Assembly: GCA_038496445.1 (NCBI GenBank)
Contig: JALMLS010000418.1
Location: forward strand, 224,264-288,263
Source: Trichosphaerium sp. ATCC 40318
Lineage: Eukaryota > Protista > Tubulinea
Direction of reading: 5' to 3'
Length of the DNA stretch: 64,000 bases
The translations under genes and the position numbers were made by a program. Every line of letters begins with the position of its first letter. Positions within the stretch are counted from its first letter, which is position 1. Below are positions 33,542 to 46,174 of this stretch, in pieces. The notes beneath the pieces are model-generated. The model saw nothing but the letters and a program-made list of their open reading frames with translations, was not told where the DNA came from and ran no database searches.

Positions 33542-35572
33542 TTAAATTACGATAGCAGGTTCTAACTCTTTGTCGAGTAATTCCTGAGCGTAAGGGAGCC
33601 AATATTGGCTTGTGCGAAGCTCTACAAAAATATTAGTAAAAGAAAAAGGAGATCTCATATTCGTACCAAGTCCGAAAGCGTTGCCCATACCACGCATGAG
33701 CACTGATACTCTAGCGGCCATTACATATTCTTCTGCCAAATGTACTATAGGATCTGTTTCCTCTGCCCAATCGAGAAATTGTTGTACATTGCGGTTACCA
33801 AGAACATCTTCTGAAAATCTATCGTTCCAAAAGCAAGCAAGCTTGTATAAAATTTCTGGCTTGTTACGCTTTGTTTCTGCTCCTAAGTCCTCATGGAATA
33901 CTCTTACAACTTCTTCTTTATCATCTTTAGCCAAAGCAACCATAAGTTTAGCAAACTTCACACGTGTCACTTTGTCAATCGTCTTAACTTGACCATAATC
34001 TATGTAAAAAATTAGCCAAATGTTTAGCCACACTCGCCTATTAGCCCAATTCTACCATCCTCCAGTAGCTATATTATACCCATTAAATAACCGCGCATGT
34101 GATGAGCATTATATAAACGTACCATGATATTGCCAGGGTGAGGATCACCATTAAACTCTCCATCTACAAAAATTTCATGACCATGAACATCCATAAGAAG
34201 TTCTATCATCTCGCCCAAGTTAGGTGGTAAAACAGACTCTTTGTATTCCATATTTGGCGCTAACCAACCAATACTCCAGTTGTATATAAACCTTAGAGTA
34301 TTTAATGTATAATCATAAGTGTGTATCATCTGATGATATCTCTTCATGTCAGCATTTGCTTCAGCTGCATTTTTAAATTGACGGTTTCTTATTTTTTCTT
34401 TTTGTTCAGCTTCAAGTTCTTCAACTGTTGTTCCTTGTTGCTCAGCGTATGCCTTGAAATTATCACGAAGACCATCAACGAGTTTAACACCTTTAAGCAA
34501 ATCCATAACGAGTACTTCTTTGTACATAATTCGAGTACTGGTTTAGGTACTACAACTTTATCTCCCCATTTAGGTGTTATATTCTCCGCTATACTCTCCA
34601 AGTTACTAGCCTCTCCAACGTAATCAAATTCTGTCAAGAATTGCTACATGGAAAAGAGAGGTATAAGCACAAGAAAAGAGGATTGATGAAGAAAAGTGAG
34701 GTGAAAGATTCGTTACCTTTTCAATCTCTTCCAAAGGTTTTACATGTTGAGGCATTGCAAACGAACAAAATGTTTTCATTGTTTTTAAATCTGAACGGAA
34801 CCTTTGTTCTATATTTGGAAACATAACTTTAACAGCAACTTCCTTTCCGCTTCCCAATAACCTAGCACGATGAACCTATACAACAACAATCAAATCAAAG
34901 AAAAAAAAGTTGTCACGTAAAAAAAATCCTGTCACACGTGACAAGTACTTACTTGACCGATACTAGCTGCACCAATTGGCTCATCATCCCAATACTCAAA
35001 TACCTCGGAGATGGGTTTACCCAAAGACTTTTCTACAATAGCTCTAGCTTGTCCTTCTTCAAACTCAGTCGGTACCTCATCTTGTAGTTTCTTACACCAC
35101 TACGAACACGTGTTAATACAAAAAAAACACGTGATTTTCGTACAGCTAAATACTGGCCAGGCACAAAAAAGTCTAGAACGCTTAGGAGTTGTGCTTGCTT
35201 TAAATAAAAGCCTCGAAGTCTTAAACAAAGCTTTTCTACTACTGGAGCGTATCTAACATGTGGTGAATTCACTGATGCGTAGAATAGCGTAGAATAGCGT
35301 AAAAGACGCCTAGACATACATGTCATGCAGTTTATCAAACTCTGCGAGTGTTTCCTAAGTCGTTTAGCTATATTTTTGTTATTTGATAGTACTTTTTCTG
35401 AAAGGTCTTTTGTTTGGTACTGTAGGTATCTATAGTGAACGTAGATTGGAAAAACTTTACTCCAAAAGGTCATTGAACGCCTAGATCCTTCATCAAAGCT
35501 ATAAGCAGCTCCGCCGCCTGCTACAACTGTTCCTGCCGCGCCTAGAGCTATTCTACTCAACAAGAAGGCCAT
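33542..35572 (-). CDS. ABC1/ADCK (UbiB-family) atypical kinase, probably mitochondrial
   Basis: LRGFYLKQAQLLS, PIGAASIGQVHRA, VAVKV, EFDYVGEASN, FNGDPHPGNI, IDYGQVK. Confidence 0.92.
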
Positions 35573-35886: not shown

Positions 35887-37412
35887 ATGTCACTCGATAA
35901 AGCAACAGCCTCAAGCATTGGCAAAAACGTTCAAATACAGGCTAATTTTCGCCTACAGTCCATTTCTGTTACCGTAGGTACAGTAATCATGTGTCACACC
36001 AATTCCACCTGCTAAAATACGTAGACAAGCGTTTATACAGCTTTATTTCTCCAAAAGCGGAGTATGGGATGACTTGTGGCGCGTCATCGCTTGCATCAAA
36101 TGATGGCAATCTAGTAAGCACCTACGACGCTAAAACATTGGTTCTAATTAATAATAATAGGTTATAACCGCTCACGACGATGCAACACTTCAAGCATGGG
36201 AATTCAAAGGTCAACAGCCATTGCCATACGTAAAACGCTCTAACATCAATCACAAACTGTTTAATAACGATTGGTATCTAGGGTACAATGAAAGGACATG
36301 TGGGTGACGTTTACACATGTCAACTTTTTCCAAGCGGTAAAGTTGTACTGAGTTCTGGTACTCATAAAGTTTTTGTTTTTTCTTATCCAAATTAACCAAG
36401 TTTTTACTTTAAGGTGCTGATACACAAATCAAGATTTGGTCTTTAATTTATGACTGTGAGTGTGTAGCTACACTTACAGGTCATAAACAAGCTGTATTTG
36501 GAACTGATATTATTGGTCAAGGACGGGAAATTGTCTGTAAGAAAATTGTGTTCTCGTAATCGAAAAAACTGATTTGATTTTTTTAGCATGCTCTAGAGAC
36601 ACCACAATAAAGTTATGGAGTGTTCCTACTAAAGAATGTGAAGCTACATTAAATACATCCAGTACGTCATAAATAAGCTCCGAAAATAGAGCAAAACACG
36701 TGATAGATGGATTTTTTTTCTGATAACAAAAATAGGTGCTGTAAATCAATGTCGCATTCTTTCACATCCCAATTCTGGAAGTACGTTCGCTTTAAAAATA
36801 AGTAGATGTATTTGAATTAATCACATTATATTATAGATGAAGGAAACAATATTGTTATGGCTGTAACAGAAAATGGAGCGTTGCACGCATTCGATCTTAC
36901 TTCACAAAAAAAGGTTAAAAAAATAAGTTAACCTGTTTTCTGTTCTTACTGTTAACCTCAGGTTTTTTCTCCAATAACTCATAAATCTGCTTTGAACTGT
37001 TGCTCTGCTACAAGTAATCCACATGTTATATCCGCTGGATCACAGAACGGCATAGTCTATTTTTATGATACTAGAAAGCCGTACGTAAATTTTTTTCTTC
37101 ATAAAAATACTTATACCAATCAGGACTGAAAACCTATATCAACATCAACGAAGTCAAGCACCTATAAGATCTCTACATCCACAAGCAAACGATAGGATAT
37201 GGGTAGGAACAGGTATGAAGAGAAAGAAAAAAAAGTGAAACTAAAAAAAAGCCACAGGAGACGGAATGCTTTTTAAACTCAATGTCAAAGAAAAGAGAAC
37301 AGAACTTGATTGTATTGGCAGCGATCTTGAAAGTATTACTTCAGTACATAGCTCAGGTGGTAGCTTATTCACTACTTCAAATGATAAAGTACTGAGAAAG
37401 TACAAACTGTAA
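35887..37412 (+). CDS. PAAF1: Proteasomal ATPase-associated factor 1 / Rpn14-like WD40 protein
   Basis: GHVGDVYTCQLFPSGKVVLSSGADTQIKIWS...CVATLTGHKQAVFGTDIIGQGREIVSCSRDTTIKLW closely follows the PAAF1 repeats. Confidence 0.8.
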
Positions 37413-37648: not shown

Positions 37649-40600
37649 TTAACTTTGCTCACTGTCATCACTTTCCTCTTCACTACTAAAGCTCTCATTT
37701 TGCTCAGCAAACTGTCGTCGTTTCCTCTCTCGGATACTACTAGTTCTAAGAGCTCTTGGTTTTGGAATACGCTTTTTCTTTGTGTCAGGAGGTCCTGTAG
37801 GTGCTGCTTTCTTTCTTGCACTCAACGAACTAAACAGAGATAAATAAGTAAAATAAGACACGACAACAATGAGAACAACACTTTCTCGTATTTTACAAAG
37901 GACCACTAATAACGTTTTCATGGGCATACCAAAATTTTTACAAAAAAAAATCAATGGACATACCTTTTTTGTTTATAATGTACTAGATGCTCTGTAGAAT
38001 TCCTTCGTTGTGCTGCATCAAAATTCTTTATCATTCTTTTCTTTTCAGGTGTACTTGTAGAACTTATTGTTTCAGGCGTGGATCCAACAGTCTTTGATTT
38101 ACCTGAGAAAAAACAGTTAAAACAAGTCACTGAAAAAAGAAAATATCTCATACGTTTTGTAGTTCTTGGACTGTTTGAGTCATCAGTCATTACTAGAGAA
38201 GAAGAGCTACCGCTCCCTTGAAGGGAGGTTTCTACTTCATGACCAGAAAACACATCATCAGTTGGTTCTGATTGAGATGGGCTTGATTTACCAGTACGAG
38301 CTGCACGCCTTGTTTTTCCCTTAAGGGTACGTTTAGACTTTGATCTTGAAGGTTTCTTCTCCTCAGCTCCCATAGATGGACTAGCTGGTCCATTCCTTCC
38401 TTCTAATGTTTGCCCTTTTCCATGGATATTAAGAACATTATCACGTGGTGTTTTTGTTGGATTTTCACCAGAATGTTCTGAAATGGATATTTTATCTCCA
38501 TCTTCTTCTTGAGTTGACTCAGTAGCTGATTCGTTAGCCTCTGGGATATCTTCAACTGAAGTTGCTTTCCTTGGGTGTTGCGAGAAGAACTGTGATAAAA
38601 CTTCTACATCAAAGCCTTCAGGTAGACTAGCAAAAAGAGGATGCTTAAACAAACCATCAGCAAAGCCAAGTGTATCATATTGCATACCTTTAAGAGATCA
38701 ATAGACTCCGGTCTATCTGCTGCGTTTCTTGTCATACACTGCTCTACAAAACTTACAAACTCAGGTTTATAGAGTCCAGGTTCTTGCAATCGAGCTGGTT
38801 CCTAGGTTGTGGATAAATAAATGATCGAAATATGTCGAAAGATAATTTTGGTAGGTCAAATGGGATACAAGCGTACTTGTGAAGATATCTTAAAGAGCGC
38901 AGATATTGGTGGACGATCGTGATAAGGTGGTTTTGTCTCTGCTAGCTCAATACATGTAACACCTAAAGACCACACATCTACCTTTTGAGTATGGCCATCT
39001 TCCATAACAATCTCTGGTGCCATCCTACAACAAAATTAAAAAACGAACATTCCATCGCTCATGAAGTGATTAAAACATACCAATGAGGTGATCCTACACT
39101 AGTATAACGTTCTATCATATTATTCACCTGTGCAGATATCGAAAAATCGGCTAAATAGAACAGGTAAGTTACTTTCTTTGATTAAGTTGCATTTTTTTGT
39201 AAAGTTGACTTACTGAGTTTACAAACACCACCAGTTTTAGCTAAAACATTAGCAGCTTTAATGTTTCTGTGTATACGATTATGCTTATGAATAAAAGAAA
39301 GAGATTTGACTAGTTGTAACATAATAGCTACAATACACTCTTCAGGTATAGGACCACCAATACGGTCCATAAGGTCTACTAAAGACCCTATATCACAATA
39401 CTCCATGACAACCTAAATCTCCGATTTAGCTTTTTTTCGAAGCGAGAGGCACGAAGACAAAAAATCAAAGTTGAGGTTTTGAAGGTAAAAGGCTTAGATG
39501 GTAAACATCTGGTTTCGTGTACCCATGGTTTCTTGTTCCTCATGTAAACTCCATGATATTTTACAATATTAACATGTTGTAAATCATTCAATGCACGTAA
39601 TTCTGCTTCTAATGACTTGCAGTTGATATTTTCATTAAATATCTTAATAGCTACTTTATCTGTAGAGTCTATCTGATGTGCACAATAAACAGTACCAAAT
39701 GCACCTTTACCAAGAATCTCGCCTGAACAAAAAAAACCAATAAATAATTTGCATTCAAGTACGAACAACAAGAGCTCATGTTATAGAGTGCAACTCAAAT
39801 TTAAAAAATCCTTCTTACAAAGAAGGCGCACGTACCTCTTTGAAATATTTTGGCAGGATTATTCTTATAGTAAATATCCTCTGGAGAACTCCTACAAACA
39901 ACTTGTTAGCACCACAACAACAATAAAAATAAATGAAACATTTAGTGTTCGTACTGTGTCACTTCATATTTTAGAAGAGAATTTTGAGTCCTTAGAGCAT
40001 CTCGCTCTTCTCTCAGCTCAGTCAATTGCGCTCTATGAACAAGTCATTACATTGGCTGTTTTTAAAACCATTAAAGAGATTTAACACGAACCTGACTCTT
40101 GTGAGCTCTTCTGTGTTCATAACTGCTCCGTTACGATCTTTCTTGCTTAATTTCCTTTCAAGAGCTTCTATAGACTCACTAGAAAGGAAAGATGTCTCAC
40201 TCAACGCCATAGATGATGTAGCATCTTTAAAAACAAATATGTCAAAAAAAATAGTTTAGAAGTTGATTTATAAACATACCTATAATACCAGGCGCTGCAG
40301 CACCTGTCCGTCTAAACTGAGCGACATAATTATTACCCATTTGGGATAGAGACATTTGCAAGAACATCTTTTAAGAAAAATCGGTTAGAAAAACGCTAAA
40401 AAGAGCCAAAACGCTATCAAATATAGCCACAAGAGTGTCAACTAAAACGTTTAACGTACTTTTGATCCATTTCTGTGTTTAGCTTCAATAGTCCTTGATG
40501 TATTCATCATTTTCTGTATTTTGCTCTGTTTGTATGATTTTAAATACTGTTCATGCTTTTTAGGGCTTAAAAACATTAACATCTGCAAAAAAAAGGTATC

Positions 40601-41284
40601 AGGACCTAAGAATCTATATCAACTTCTATGATACTTACTGTCACGTTATGTCCTAGAGCCTCACGCTCATCCCATCCAAACATTTCTTGTGCTGCTTTGT
40701 TAAAGCATACAATACGCCCATCATCGTTGGTGACTACTATTGCGTCTGGTAGGATAGCAAACGCGCTAAAGAACAGGATCAGTACCGAAATTGATTGTGA
40801 TGGTTTTTTTTGTCTGCAACGTTAATTGTTACGCTTGTTTGTTGCAAATAGAGTAGTGTAGAGTAATACCTAAACGGTTCCACATCGGTGGCAGCCACTA
40901 TTAATACCGCAATCCATTGGTCCTATTTCTTTTTAGTTTCAGTACTGGTGGTTGTAGTATGTACCATGTCTGATTTAGAGCGCGTTTGAAGGAATAATAA
41001 TTTACGCTTGTTTATTACAACGAAGCAATGGTCGTGTGCGGCTAGATCTGCTGCTTGGATTAACGCTCCTTCAAGCTTGATCTTTTTCCATGGTCGCTTT
41101 GAAGTAGCCTAAGGTGAAGCTTCAGAGCCTGAACTAGTTGATACGCTTATATAGCACTTACCGCAACGTTGTTATACAATTCTAGGCGATCTGCAAGCAC
41201 TACACACCATTTTTTCTTCCATTTGCTCCCTGTTTTCTTACGAAGGAATCCTTGCTTTAGAATAGGGTCGCTGTTACTTGCCAT
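37649..41284 (-). CDS. PH + FixL-like PAS + STE20-like (pseudo)kinase with Ser-rich basic tail
   Basis: PH: ILKQGFLRKKTGSKWKKKWCVVL...DQWIAVL. PAS: LPDAIVVTNDDGRIVCFNKAAQEMFGWDEREALGHNVTMLM...KHEQYL...SRTIEAKHRNGS. Kinase: LGKGAFGTVY, VAIK, MEYCDIGSL, HRNIKAANVL, DFS, GSPHWMAPE, DVWSLGVTCIELAETKPPY. Last exon frame uncertain (stop at 37649 or 37639). Confidence 0.88.
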
Positions 41285-41807
41285 TTTATTTCTATTAGTT
41301 CATTCCGCGTTTTACGTCACAATGAGGTTTTGAATAAGTACTTTCACACGTATGTATGCGTCTGGAGTAAATAAAGGCCGATGTTACCTGACTTATCCCC
41401 TTGCCCAAAGTAGTTAATTTTCGGAATAAAACTGCTTCCAAAGGAGTAAAACGCATACGATTGCATTAACCCACTCAATGTGTTGTTTAGTTCGGTAGCT
41501 CATAAAGCGAGTAAGCTAAACTCCGTGCTTGCATCCGTAAAACAACATCCTGCATCACGGCACAACCAGTTAGACGCTAGATGCGACTCAGTAAGCTAGC
41601 AGCTAAGAAATTTAGTACATTTACATGTTATGTACTGTACAAAACAAAGGAGTCCTCTTTTCTCGTTCTCACTATTACGTTGTTTGTCAGAAAATACGAA
41701 TTCAAGCAAAAAATGTCTTACAAACCGGGCAATTTGCATCAACAAAAAAAAAATAACTCGAAAAGAATTTAAAATCTGAGTCAAACCATTTGGCAACAAT
41801 ACGCCAA

Positions 41808-43873
41808 ATGCGCCGCCGAAGATTCGGGTCAGTACAATAATACTATCTAAGCGCATTACAATGATCTAACATGCAATAGGGCCATTTTATGCTGTTTAAT
41901 ATGCCTAATAGGCATAACTGCTCTTATTAATGCTATACTATTCGCAGGTAATATCTTTTTTCGTTTTAGCTTTTTTTAATACTGTCCACGTGTTTTGTAA
42001 AAAAAAACTGATCTAAATCGATAAACTAACTCAAGAAAGGCCTTGGAGACGTAGAAACGAACGCATGGTTTGATTCATACAAAGCCATACGAGTATACTG
42101 ATTAGATCAAGGCTACAGTACTAAAAACGCGTAGGAATCAGTAAGACCAGCTGTAGGGATCGTTGTGAAGCACTTCAAACGCCAAACACACTGGAACAGA
42201 GAAGAAAAGCAGGAAAGCGAAGTAGTCAGTGAAGACGAGCTAAGAAGGGCTAAATCTACTGCTAAGCCGATTGTAACAAATAATGATAAAGACGCTGGTA
42301 TGAGAATTGACATTTTTTTTTCACTAATTGCAGCGAGTAGTCAAACCTACAGATGTACCTGCAGCGCAAAAAACCGCTGATAAACGAGATTTAGTATTAA
42401 AGCAACTCCTTGAGAAGAGACGACGCATCGCTGAAGGAAAAACTGTATTAAATACAGTCGTCCCAACTGCGCATGCGACTACACAGCATGTTGATATCAA
42501 GAAGACATCAGCTCCTACGCCAAAACCAAATATAGTCAAATCTACAATCTCAACTGATATTGACAAACACAAGACGGCTGTAACTCAAGCAGCGAAGAGT
42601 ACAACTACAAAACCAATGAACAGAGTGATTTACCTCGAAGACCTTAACAAGTACTCTACCTTAAAGAGACACCAAGCGGAATACTTCTGATTCTCTTGTA
42701 GAAATGAACACTTTGATGTCACTCTGTGTATACTAGTAACAGAAGGAGATAAGGTAATCACCAAGCTGTTACTGAGGCTTTTGATGTTTGTTCTCTTTTG
42801 ATAACTAATTGATCGTTAGCGCTTTGTTGAAGGTTTGTTGGATTCTATTAAGAAAGTTGGTTTATTAGAAGCTATGAATGGGACTGTAATATTGGCTGAC
42901 GAAATCACACCTGATCTTCAGAGTGTTGGTGACGCATATGAAGCACGTGTTATGCACTCAAATGGCATTGATGGTATCAGTATGAAAATTACAAAGATGA
43001 TAAAGTAAGAGAAAACTGAGACAACCTGTAACCAATTTGAGTTTAGGAGCTTGAAGACCAAGTACGTTATTCTATCTACACCTGGGTGGTATATACCACA
43101 ATACATAAGAGGTAAACTACGTAGTGTTGCTGTATACTAAATAATGCCCAAGGCTGGCCACACTTGCTTACAGAATCTATTGATATTCTTGCCAAAGTGC
43201 GTTTTGGTTTTATGAGTACTTTTCTACTCATGTCCTCATTTTAATATTAGAAAGAGGCATCGGTTGTTCGATTGTATAATCCAGAAGTGAACAGACCTCA
43301 CTCTAAGAACAGCTGTTAGTACCAATTTTTTATTAACTTTATTAAATTTTTGTTTAGATAGAAAGCGTTGTAGTACTCTTAACCCTGAGCGAGTACCGTA
43401 CGTGCCTATTTCGTATTAATGAGGTAGTGTATTCTAATGATACTTGACAATAGGTACTGGTTGTGTAATTGTTTTTTCTTGCCAGAGATAAACGTTGAAG
43501 ACATATATCCTGATGAGATTTGGCGTTGTGGTCCAGAAGAAGGAGATGCCAGTTTTTATTGTACAAAAGGAAACCACTGTAACCTATCAGTACGGATTTT
43601 ATCCTCTCTTTTATGTACAAATCAATTAATTTGTTCTTCATTATAGTTAAATCCTAGTATATTTCGGAAAGGCTTCTGGTACGATAACACTTATTCCTTT
43701 TTTTTTCTGATTTCTTTTCCTCGTCTTTTAGGCTTCAATATTTGAGTTGGTTTTCAAAGAATGATAAAAGTCAAAGTAGAAAAGAGTTCGAGCATGGATA
43801 CAGAAAAACATGGAAGAAACTTGATTTGACTATAGCTTCCAGTAGGAGTATATTCCATGTTAAAAAAAAGTAA
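41808..43873 (+). CDS. Type II membrane protein, divergent GT-A/GT2-like glycosyltransferase
   Basis: MRRRRF + signal anchor AILCCLICLIGITALINAILFA, Thr/Pro-rich stem, then KTKYVILSTPGW, VVRL and SLNPSIFRK motifs resembling protist GT2-like proteins. Confidence 0.45.
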
Positions 43874-44266: not shown

Positions 44267-46174
44267 TTATTTTACTTTTTGGTTGTTTGCTGTAGCTCTG
44301 TTCTCGTACATTTCCTCTATATTTATAATGAGAGTTAACAATGGCTTTGGATTATAAGGGAATAATCCTTTATCATTTAATCTTGCTATGGCATAACGTA
44401 ATCGTATAAGAGTACCAACAAATTTATCAATAGGTTCATCTTTTTTTTTAGTTCCTTCAATTGATATATTACCAAACTTGACCAAAATGTCTTCCTCGGG
44501 GATATCACCTTCATCAAAACCATCCAGAGATATCTCCAAATTAAAGTCTCTTTGTGTAATCTTAAGATACGTTACAAAGTATTGTAGAAAAGAAGTTTCG
44601 TTATCCATAAGTAAGTCAACAAGAACAGAATGATCAAAAGATATTTCACAAAAAAAACGAAAGAGTAAAGCATGTGGGTTGTATGCTTTGAATAAGTCAC
44701 TTATTTGATCATTATTAGCACAATGAACACTTAATCTTGTATGAATATTCAACAGAGAAGACAATACAGATACCATCATACCATCATCAGAGATAAATAA
44801 GGAAATAAGTTGAGAAGGATCGAACTGTTTGAAAAAAGCTAAAACGCAATGTTAGGTAAAAAGATTTTTTCTTTGCTTACCTGAGTTAACTTGGAGTTGT
44901 CCTAATAACCAAGAAATACCTTCTTTCGTATTAGCATATGTCACTTTATCCAAAAGATCAAGTAGAAGTATAATAAAAGGTCGATGAAGTATGCTTGAAT
45001 TATCAACTGGTTTTATGAATTGGCAAAAATCAAAATCATCAAAATACTCTTCATCTTGTTGCTTTGGAACCATTGATGGTATAGCCGATACTAAAGCTGT
45101 AACAATAACACCTATCTATTTAAAGTATAACAGTAAGCAATTAAGATAAATTAAGATATATACAGTACCTGATCGATATCTTCAATGTGAGGCATATACG
45201 TTTGTAAGATTTTAATACATCCCAACCTTAGTTCAACCCACCCTATAGAATCTTTACCAGATGATTTAATAATAAGCAGTAGCTATTTATGTGTTAGTGT
45301 ATCAGTTATGCAAGGTCGTAGCTACATACACGGAGCACTACTTTGTGAAATTGTGAAATCCGATCAACTGGGTCAACATTGCTTAATAGCGTTGCTATAT
45401 TGATGTATCTTTTAAACAATGCCAAGTGTTGTTGAAACCTTAGAGGATGCTCGATAATGGACTGAATAGATGCATCATTCAAGCGACAAATACTAACTGA
45501 AATAATCCCGTGAATATCAATCTGTGTCAAAAGAAGACGCAAAATATCATGACGTTCCTGAAAAAAGTAAGAAAACAAAACTATTATCGTGTACAACGCA
45601 CGTTGTCCAGCACGTGTTTTATGACACGGCATAACCACCAAAGTGACGTACTATGTTGTTCTGGTGTATAAAACGGAATGCGAGCGATGACTATAGTGAG
45701 TAAACGTTGATTGACGTTAATGTCGTTCCAATCAAGCATAACTAGATCTGCAAGAATGAGGCCTTTGCAATGCTTTAGCTATCGTTTTGAACACAAGAAA
45801 ATGTACCTGCGACGTGGCTCGTTACTCTGTTGCCTTGTTCCCACAGTTTTAAAACCGTTTCGTTTATGTCGTTTATACACGGTGAAATAATCTGCCTACA
45901 CATTACCCCTACGTGTTCTTCAAACTCTACGTCATCTTTTAGATATTGAATAGCCCTTTGAACGATATTTGCTGATAGTAGAGTTTTATCGATGCTGCTG
46001 TGTTCCTAGGCGTATGCGTAAGCGTAGAAAAGCCAATTAACGTACCCACAAAGGTCTAATAGCCAACGATAATTGTTCAGCGGTTATTTTAGCTTCACCG
46101 CATAATACAGCGCCTGTTGTAACTGCTGCGAATAAAGTTTCGAATTGCCCAAGAGTGTCAATACCAATTTCCAT
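44267..46174 (-). CDS. LINS1: Protein Lines homolog (LINES_N and LINES_C domains)
   Basis: FISDDDGMMVSVL...NPHALLFRFFCEISFDHSVLVDLLMDNETSFLQYFVTYLK...LIRLRYAIARLNDKGLFPYNPKPLL. Confidence 0.85.

Follow-up and report, generated by a model that had tools for sequence, protein, structure and literature searches.

How oxygen is sensed in microbial eukaryotes is poorly understood, and the FixL/DosP type of direct heme-based O2 sensor is a textbook case from bacteria, where it feeds histidine kinases or cyclic di-GMP enzymes. The question raised by the locus described here is whether a sensor of this type has been built into a eukaryotic signalling protein of the protist Trichosphaerium sp. ATCC 40318. 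A 64,000-nucleotide stretch of its contig JALMLS010000418.1 (assembly GCA_038496445.1, positions 224,264 to 288,263 of the forward strand; hereafter the window) carries a minus-strand gene that, in our model, joins a PAS domain to a predicted PH domain and a STE20-type kinase domain. The explanation that we favour, with somewhat better than even confidence, is that a FixL-class PAS domain binds heme b and senses gas in a protein of the order PH, PAS, coiled coil and STE20 pseudokinase. Window positions are used throughout, and the gene model was built by hand from the three-frame translation and the strand sequence, and then checked by script. The features on which the heme question turns are these:

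37649..41284, minus strand: entire coding region, PH-PAS-coiled coil-STE20-like protein (17 exons, 16 introns, 821 amino acids)
41284-41282, minus strand: start codon ATG
37651-37649, minus strand: stop codon TAA
40639..40765, minus strand: PAS exon 4, N-cap and A-beta to E-alpha, placed by its match to Pfam PAS (E 2e-9)
40460..40582, minus strand: PAS exon 5, F-alpha helix, FG loop and start of G-beta, with the candidate proximal His and distal Arg, placed by a gapless alignment to FixL
40280..40367, minus strand: PAS exon 6, G-beta to I-beta strands followed by a Gly/Ala/Pro linker, placed by alignment to FixL
40553..40555, minus strand: codon CAT of His159, aligned with the proximal heme ligand His200 of Bradyrhizobium FixL (BjFixL)
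40493..40495, minus strand: codon AGG of Arg179, aligned with BjFixL Arg220, which contacts the heme propionate and bound O2

A preliminary description of this DNA had read a FixL-type heme-PAS domain from three exons. All three are present on the minus strand with canonical GT-AG borders and compatible phases, and the peptide spliced from them is identical to the proposed one letter for letter (model residues 108-211). The upper bound of the proposed region, 40765, coincides with the start of exon 4; the lower bound, 40295, lies inside exon 6, which extends to 40280. Because two GT-AG introns interrupt the PAS domain, the gene is nuclear, as had been argued from the same introns.

Pfam and PDB searches were made on single-exon pieces rather than on spliced domains. 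The Pfam PAS match of exon 4 bears on the profile check that had been suggested for this domain, and the same exon drew FixL heme-PAS chains as its first seven PDB matches (E about 9e-7; 38 residues aligned at 50% identity), with DosP at ranks 8-11. These best structural relatives (BjFixL 1DRM/1LSW/1XJ2, RmFixL 1D06 and Escherichia coli DosP) have the PAS fold in common with the amoeba domain. The reference Bradyrhizobium FixL was found by a degenerate DNA pattern (open reading frame L002:5526-7232, in which the position minus 63 gives the BjFixL number), and the spliced PAS domain aligned to it with 31% identity over 108 amino acids (66 bits by BLASTP, 51 bits by phmmer), which upholds the claim of an end-to-end match to the FixL heme-PAS. 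The alignment has only two short gaps, one ahead of the His and one behind the His-Arg block, and both fall in what we take to be loops of the FixL fold.

In this alignment, the columns pair model residues with BjFixL residues as H159/H200, Y162/Y203, Y166/Y207, M152/M192, K173/H214 and R179/R220, and the pairing of His159 with His200 agrees across the BLASTP, phmmer and profile alignments. The amoeba PAS shares with FixL the His on F-alpha, the Tyr residues at +3 and +7 from it, Met192, the hydrophobic distal positions and the length of the FG loop; Arg179 stands exactly 20 residues beyond His159, the same spacing as in FixL, and the hydrophobic pocket positions 215, 216, 236 and 238 are kept as M174, M175, M195 and L197. 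The block that begins at His159 corresponds to BjFixL H200-M241, 42 residues without a gap, and scores 59 with BLOSUM62 versus -35 +/- 12 for shuffled sequences (z 7.8, with none of 100,000 shuffles as good), the next best register along all of FixL scoring 5. The proximal His and the distal Arg that the preliminary description had named are both retained, in this same gapless block and in a unique register.

A likeness of this kind could reflect general PAS similarity, the match at the His and the Arg being coincidental, since PAS domains share the 'FG..xxEaiGxn' motif region and exon 5, which carries both residues, found no PDB match by itself. Coincidence is nevertheless very improbable in our estimate: the top matches of exon 4 are FixL chains and then DosP, not mixed PAS types, the ungapped block stands far above its next register, and the co-varying signature residues of the family, set out below, are all present. 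By these alignments, the PAS domain has its closest relatives in FixL and DosP and groups as a member of that class, the heme-b PAS class that forms cluster 3 of Xing et al. 2023.

To compare the heme signature across the family, exon 4 was searched with HMMER against a representative library of 1.84 billion proteins, and the 150 representatives found provided 1167 alignable PAS domains. All 150 are multi-PAS proteins, because the representatives were ranked by whole-protein score. The column of FixL residue 200 holds His in 62% of the 1167 domains, in agreement with the 60% given for the FixL/DosP cluster (Xing et al.). Where the His is present, it is accompanied by Y/F203 in 79% of domains, Y/F207 in 93%, R220 in 63%, M192 in 67% and hydrophobic residues at 215/216 in 79%/93%. 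Conversely, Y/F203, Y/F207, R220 and M192 each occur in 5-15% of the domains without the His (5-36% once 215/216 are included), and just one of 439 such domains combines Y/F203, Y/F207 and R220. The amoeba PAS carries the complete co-varying set (Y162, Y166, R179, M152, M174, M175, M195 and L197), scores 98 bits on a hidden Markov model of the His class versus 86 bits on that of the non-His domains, and has the His in all 20 of its nearest domains. Since its identity to these nearest domains is at most 36%, the residues place it as a divergent member of the FixL/DosP His class.

Membership of this class is in itself no rarity. By implication, the preliminary description had made such domains more exotic in eukaryotes than they are: protists and other eukaryotes have PAS domains of the His class that are not rare, given that euglenozoan PAS arrays carry the His and that the PAS domains of PASK proteins from Acanthamoeba, Thecamonas and Capsaspora lie inside the FixL/DosP cluster (PMC10468136). 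The euglenozoan proteins, 2600-3400 amino acids long, bear arrays of 10-13 PAS domains (P0004, from Entosiphon sulcatum in EukProt; the P0036 cluster, which includes the Rhynchopus humris protein P0154; and P0002), with 10-12 His-class domains in succession in the Entosiphon protein and the cluster of the Rhynchopus protein. The FixL-type His is found in every aligned domain of these arrays, and the Tyr and Arg signature (M-H-Y/F-Y-x-R) in most of them. Such proteins may be sensor arrays with several hemes. When two of the proteins were scanned with Pfam, PAS-family matches and no recognised output domain were obtained, P0004 giving in addition weak matches to TPR_TmcB and MLTR_LBD.

In the explanation that we favour, the single PAS domain most likely holds heme b, with His159 on F-alpha as the proximal iron ligand; Arg179, where G-beta starts, would touch a heme propionate and the bound O2, as Arg220 does in BjFixL. 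That the side chain of His159 would point into the pocket is suggested by the gapless homology to FixL chains of solved structure. In DosP, a Met stands two residues before the Arg. Because no Met occupies that position ahead of Arg179, the site resembles the five-coordinate one of FixL more than that of DosP.

The same residues could also be an inherited remnant. In that case, the architecture would be as modelled but the PAS would no longer bind heme, and its role would instead be dimerisation or the binding of some other small ligand, as it is for PAS-A of PASK: PASK PAS domains adjoin the FixL/DosP cluster, have no heme ligand and bind compounds of other kinds (PMC10468136). In favour of such a loss, the case for heme is made from sequence, the domain has diverged, its identity to the relatives found being no more than 36%, BjFixL R206 is replaced by Ser and H214 by Lys, and the kinase domain of the same protein is also degenerate, as described below. 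On the other side, the four co-varying residues, the equivalent of Met192 and pocket positions 215, 216, 236 and 238 are all kept, and this completeness counts against decay, which should have cost the site some of these residues; the near absence of the Y/F203, Y/F207 and R220 combination from non-His domains points in the same direction. A non-heme PAS with ancestral residues is the main rival reading, and we consider it rather unlikely.

Several further observations have to be set against a functional heme sensor. Besides the Ser and Lys substitutions and the lack of a PDB match for exon 5 alone, the nearest relatives among the matches found are only 30-36% identical, and the exon-4-based searches found no ortholog that would show the His or the architecture to be conserved. 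The D-I/L-T-E motif that follows I-beta and the continuous helical linker, through which bacterial PAS kinases relay their signal, are both absent, a Gly/Ala/Pro stretch following the PAS instead, which makes the coupling of the sensor to an output uncertain. Lastly, the low-depth run described below has no RNA contig over 40112-41767, so that neither introns 1-7 nor any PAS or PH exon is confirmed in RNA.

The remainder of the protein decides what such a sensor might be connected to. Its features, together with the splice joints seen in RNA, are as follows:

40870..41284, minus strand: predicted PH domain, model residues about 1-105, on exons 1-3 (41284-41162, 41108-40965 and 40922-40870) of the manual model
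39955..40224, minus strand: linker and candidate coiled coil from a crude heptad scan, on exons 7 and 8 (40224-40092 and 40032-39955)
38560..39891, minus strand: STE20/GCK-like kinase domain, on exons 9-15 (39891-39836, 39722-39523, 39412-39214, 39150-39081, 39024-38877, 38801-38688, and 38643 onward), with Pfam Pkinase matches on exons 10, 11 and 13
39263..39265, minus strand: Asn codon AAC of HRN in place of HRD, aligned against 'ihrdikaanvl' of STK24
39140..39148, minus strand: DFS in place of DFG, read from the sequence and placed from where the exons on either side align in the Pfam profile
39954/39890, 39835/39721, 39214/39150, 39080/39023, 38876/38800, 38688/38643, 38151/38099 and 37964/37829, minus strand: joints confirmed by spliced RNA contigs
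37649..38559, minus strand: C-terminal tail of about 260 amino acids, rich in Ser, Lys and Arg, with two introns (RNA joints 38099/38151 and 37829/37964)

The kinase domain belongs by its matches to the STE20 group: the best PDB matches of its pieces were MST3/STK24, STK25, MST4, MST1/2 (STK3/4), TAO and PAK, while exons 10 and 12 alone gave none (for exon 10, down to the E 1e-6 threshold only). In the gene model the PAS lies between the predicted PH domain and a STE20-fold domain, in the order that had been proposed. An RNA contig over 39214-39351 is identical to the genome, and therefore the Asn codon of HRN is present in the RNA too. With Asn in place of the catalytic Asp and DFS in place of DFG, we infer that the domain is catalytically lost or very weak, and therefore a pseudokinase or a very weak kinase. 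Weak activity would be possible, because the ATP-binding motifs are preserved and the sequence still has a Gly loop, the VAIK Lys and the Asp of DFG, together with APE and a Thr in the activation loop. Among known pseudokinases, STRAD-alpha and others of the STE20 group likewise have a STE20 fold without the catalytic Asp. HER3 reads HRN and keeps ATP binding, and pseudokinases of these kinds signal by allostery or scaffolding; we know of none among STRAD-alpha, the other STE20 pseudokinases and HER3 that has a PAS or PH domain.

Whether PH, PAS and kinase form one polypeptide depends on the splicing of the gene. All 16 introns of the model are GT-AG, measure 42-134 nucleotides and keep the frame in a scripted check. 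The RNA evidence consists of the assembled contigs (about 13 Mb) of one public low-depth run, the only one to contain this DNA; two other sources had none of it. Among these contigs, spliced ones confirm eight introns (8, 9 and 11-16 of the model), intron 10 found no confirmation, and support runs from exon 8, the 3' part of which lies in a spliced contig, to the 3' end of the gene, so that transcription is seen for its 3' two thirds. Of the exon linkage that the preliminary description had wished to see in RNA, the joints from the coiled coil to the 3' end were therefore obtained, and the joins between PAS and kinase (introns 6 and 7) are crossed by no contig.

For these joins, the evidence is the frame itself. 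Exons 8, 9 and 10 have no usable start codon, and therefore the kinase reading frame reaches back at least into exon 7. Intron 7 (40091-40033) has the donor GTTCGT, the sole non-GTA donor of the gene, the other 15 introns all starting with GTA; no other splice would both preserve the frame and provide the kinase with a start codon upstream. Two translation products could still arise if intron 6 were retained: the PH-PAS protein would then stop at 40245 and translation of a kinase protein would begin 34 nucleotides later, at the first Met in exon 7 (ATG 40211), both perhaps from a shared polycistronic transcript. This in-frame Met just beyond the read-through stop, and the stretch of 40112-41767 without an RNA contig, speak for such an arrangement. 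Intron 6, however, resembles its neighbour introns: it is 55 nucleotides long, with a GTATGT donor and an AG acceptor rich in pyrimidines, and its splicing leaves the frame open. Two separate genes are also hard to fit in, as 34 nucleotides are too short for a terminator and a promoter, the genuine intergenic gaps on either side of the gene being about 250 and 650 nucleotides, and the kinase frame must in any case include exon 7. We consider two products quite unlikely. Since exons 8-10 lack a start and the 34-nucleotide gap compares with flanking gaps of about 250 and 650 nucleotides, a single PH-PAS-kinase polypeptide is highly probable from splice-site geometry and reading frame.

A smaller ambiguity concerns the start of exon 4. 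A second in-frame acceptor (AG at 40815-40814, with the exon starting at 40813) would add 16 mostly hydrophobic residues (40766-40813), and no RNA contig covers the region. This longer form is possible. It was set aside as the main form because it would place 14 consecutive hydrophobic residues ahead of the PAS N-cap, on the side of the PH domain, and the shorter form beginning at 40765 is more likely.

At the N-terminus, exon 1 alone matched Pfam PH with E 5e-5 and 24.2 bits (cut-off 25.1) over profile positions 2-35, a third of the profile, and exon 2 alone found no Pfam or PDB match. A C-terminal PH helix with the conserved Trp can be read by eye in exon 3, and the predicted PH domain is probably lipid-binding. 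Between PAS and kinase, the crude heptad scan found a heptad-like helix of about 30 residues (model residues about 257-290). At the other end of the protein, the last exon (37652-37830) encodes two basic K/R clusters that resemble a bipartite nuclear localisation signal and, beyond them, an acidic end rich in Ser.

Taken together, these parts allow a mechanism to be proposed for the favoured explanation, in which heme binding, the ligand, the direction of regulation and lipid binding are all predicted from sequence. The 821-amino-acid product would be a cytosolic signalling protein that its PH domain probably directs to phosphoinositide-containing membranes. The PAS would be followed by a flexible linker and then by the short coiled coil, probably a dimerisation element, leading to the kinase domain. 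Binding of O2 (or of NO or CO, or a redox change) at the heme would shift the FG loop; the shift would rearrange the dimer or the coiled coil, and this in turn would alter the conformation or the partner binding of the dimeric kinase-like domain. The output would be allosteric or scaffold signalling like that of STRAD-type STE20 pseudokinases.

Comparison with known systems delimits what is shared. The output of FixL is a histidine kinase and that of DosP a cyclic di-GMP phosphodiesterase, whereas the amoeba protein has a eukaryotic STE20-like (pseudo)kinase as its output. In place of HisKA and HATPase_c, a eukaryotic Pkinase domain of the STE20 group was found, and therefore the protein is no ortholog of FixL, which it resembles in the sensor domain only. 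It differs from FixL also in being encoded by a nuclear gene with two introns inside the PAS, in lacking the D-I/L-T-E motif and the continuous helix after I-beta, and in its Ser and Lys at positions 206 and 214. The Chlamydomonas FixL-like FXL proteins reportedly have PAS domains that were shown to bind heme and O2.

A parallel in plan is PASK, known from animals, fungi and some protists, in which an N-terminal PAS domain regulates a eukaryotic Ser/Thr kinase. The kinase domain of PASK is of the CAMK/AMPK-like branch, not STE20, is catalytically active and comes without a PH domain, and PAS-A of human PASK is without the heme His. The amoeba protein does not fall into the PASK family, as its kinase pieces match STE20 kinases best and its catalytic Asp is absent. 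Signalling under the control of heme, or proposed to be so, is a feature of the eukaryotic FXL proteins and of the heme-regulated eIF2-alpha kinase HRI (EIF2AK1), which binds its heme elsewhere than in a PAS domain. The PAS domain also lies N-terminal to a eukaryotic kinase, as here, in the oomycete protein PITG_01203, a fusion of PAS and MAPK (PMC3019232), and in the moss and plant PAS-Raf/CTR1-like kinases (5IU1). Unlike the amoeba kinase domain, these belong to the CMGC and TKL groups, and no heme-type signature has been reported for them; the PAS of 5IU1 was only a marginal match to exon 4 (E 0.96).

The combination as a whole had been put forward as one not known to be described. Consistent with this, we found no paper on a heme-PAS linked to a STE20 kinase or to a kinase with a PH domain, and neither a paper nor a sequence that combines PH, a heme-type PAS and STE20, the proteome side of the question having been approached with exon pieces of the split gene and not with the spliced protein. 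It is this splitting into exons that limited the search for orthologs. None of the 150 library matches to exon 4 has a Ser/Thr kinase or PH domain, the ranking by whole-protein score favouring multi-PAS proteins. A metagenome scan with a 58-amino-acid stretch of exon 4 returned only two loci, at 44-45% identity, with a PAS match and no kinase or PH match, and a homologue search with the 71-amino-acid stop-free stretch around exon 4 gave no candidate under a length filter that excludes full-length relatives. The gene has no paralog within the window. What appears to be new here is thus the occurrence of a FixL-class sensor in a PH-PAS-STE20 combination, the FixL-type PAS and other PAS-kinase fusions being already known.

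If the favoured explanation is true, a bacterial gas sensor has been rewired into eukaryotic phospho-signalling, placed behind a PH domain and ahead of a STE20-type (pseudo)kinase, and the protein would be a simple, testable candidate for how a free-living amoeba-like protist senses oxygen. On a further and less probable reading, a bacterial-type heme-PAS would act as a direct receptor for O2, NO or CO that is wired into Ser/Thr-kinase signalling through a membrane-recruited STE20 pseudokinase scaffold. This would be a eukaryotic gas-sensing route independent of the prolyl-hydroxylase/HIF-type, globin-coupled and H-NOX/guanylate-cyclase systems. The case is tempered by the freedom with which protists shuffle domains, by the presence of His-class PAS domains in other eukaryotes and by a function that is so far a prediction.

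In the neighbourhood, no functional link to the PH-PAS-kinase gene was seen for a Lines-like open reading frame (44267-44779) or for a weakly ABC1-like one. The former, on the minus strand, matches the Pfam Lines N- and C-terminal families (E 1e-14 and 2.5e-12), and the latter (34069-34527, minus strand) has a weak ABC1 atypical kinase-like match below the cut-off (E 3e-4). The genes that flank the PH-PAS-kinase gene directly, at 36837-37350 and 41945-42300, both lie on the plus strand, opposite to it, so that it is convergent with one neighbour and divergent from the other. Both are transcribed, as seen in spliced contigs, and their introns are very short and GT-AG (42-48 and 92 nucleotides).

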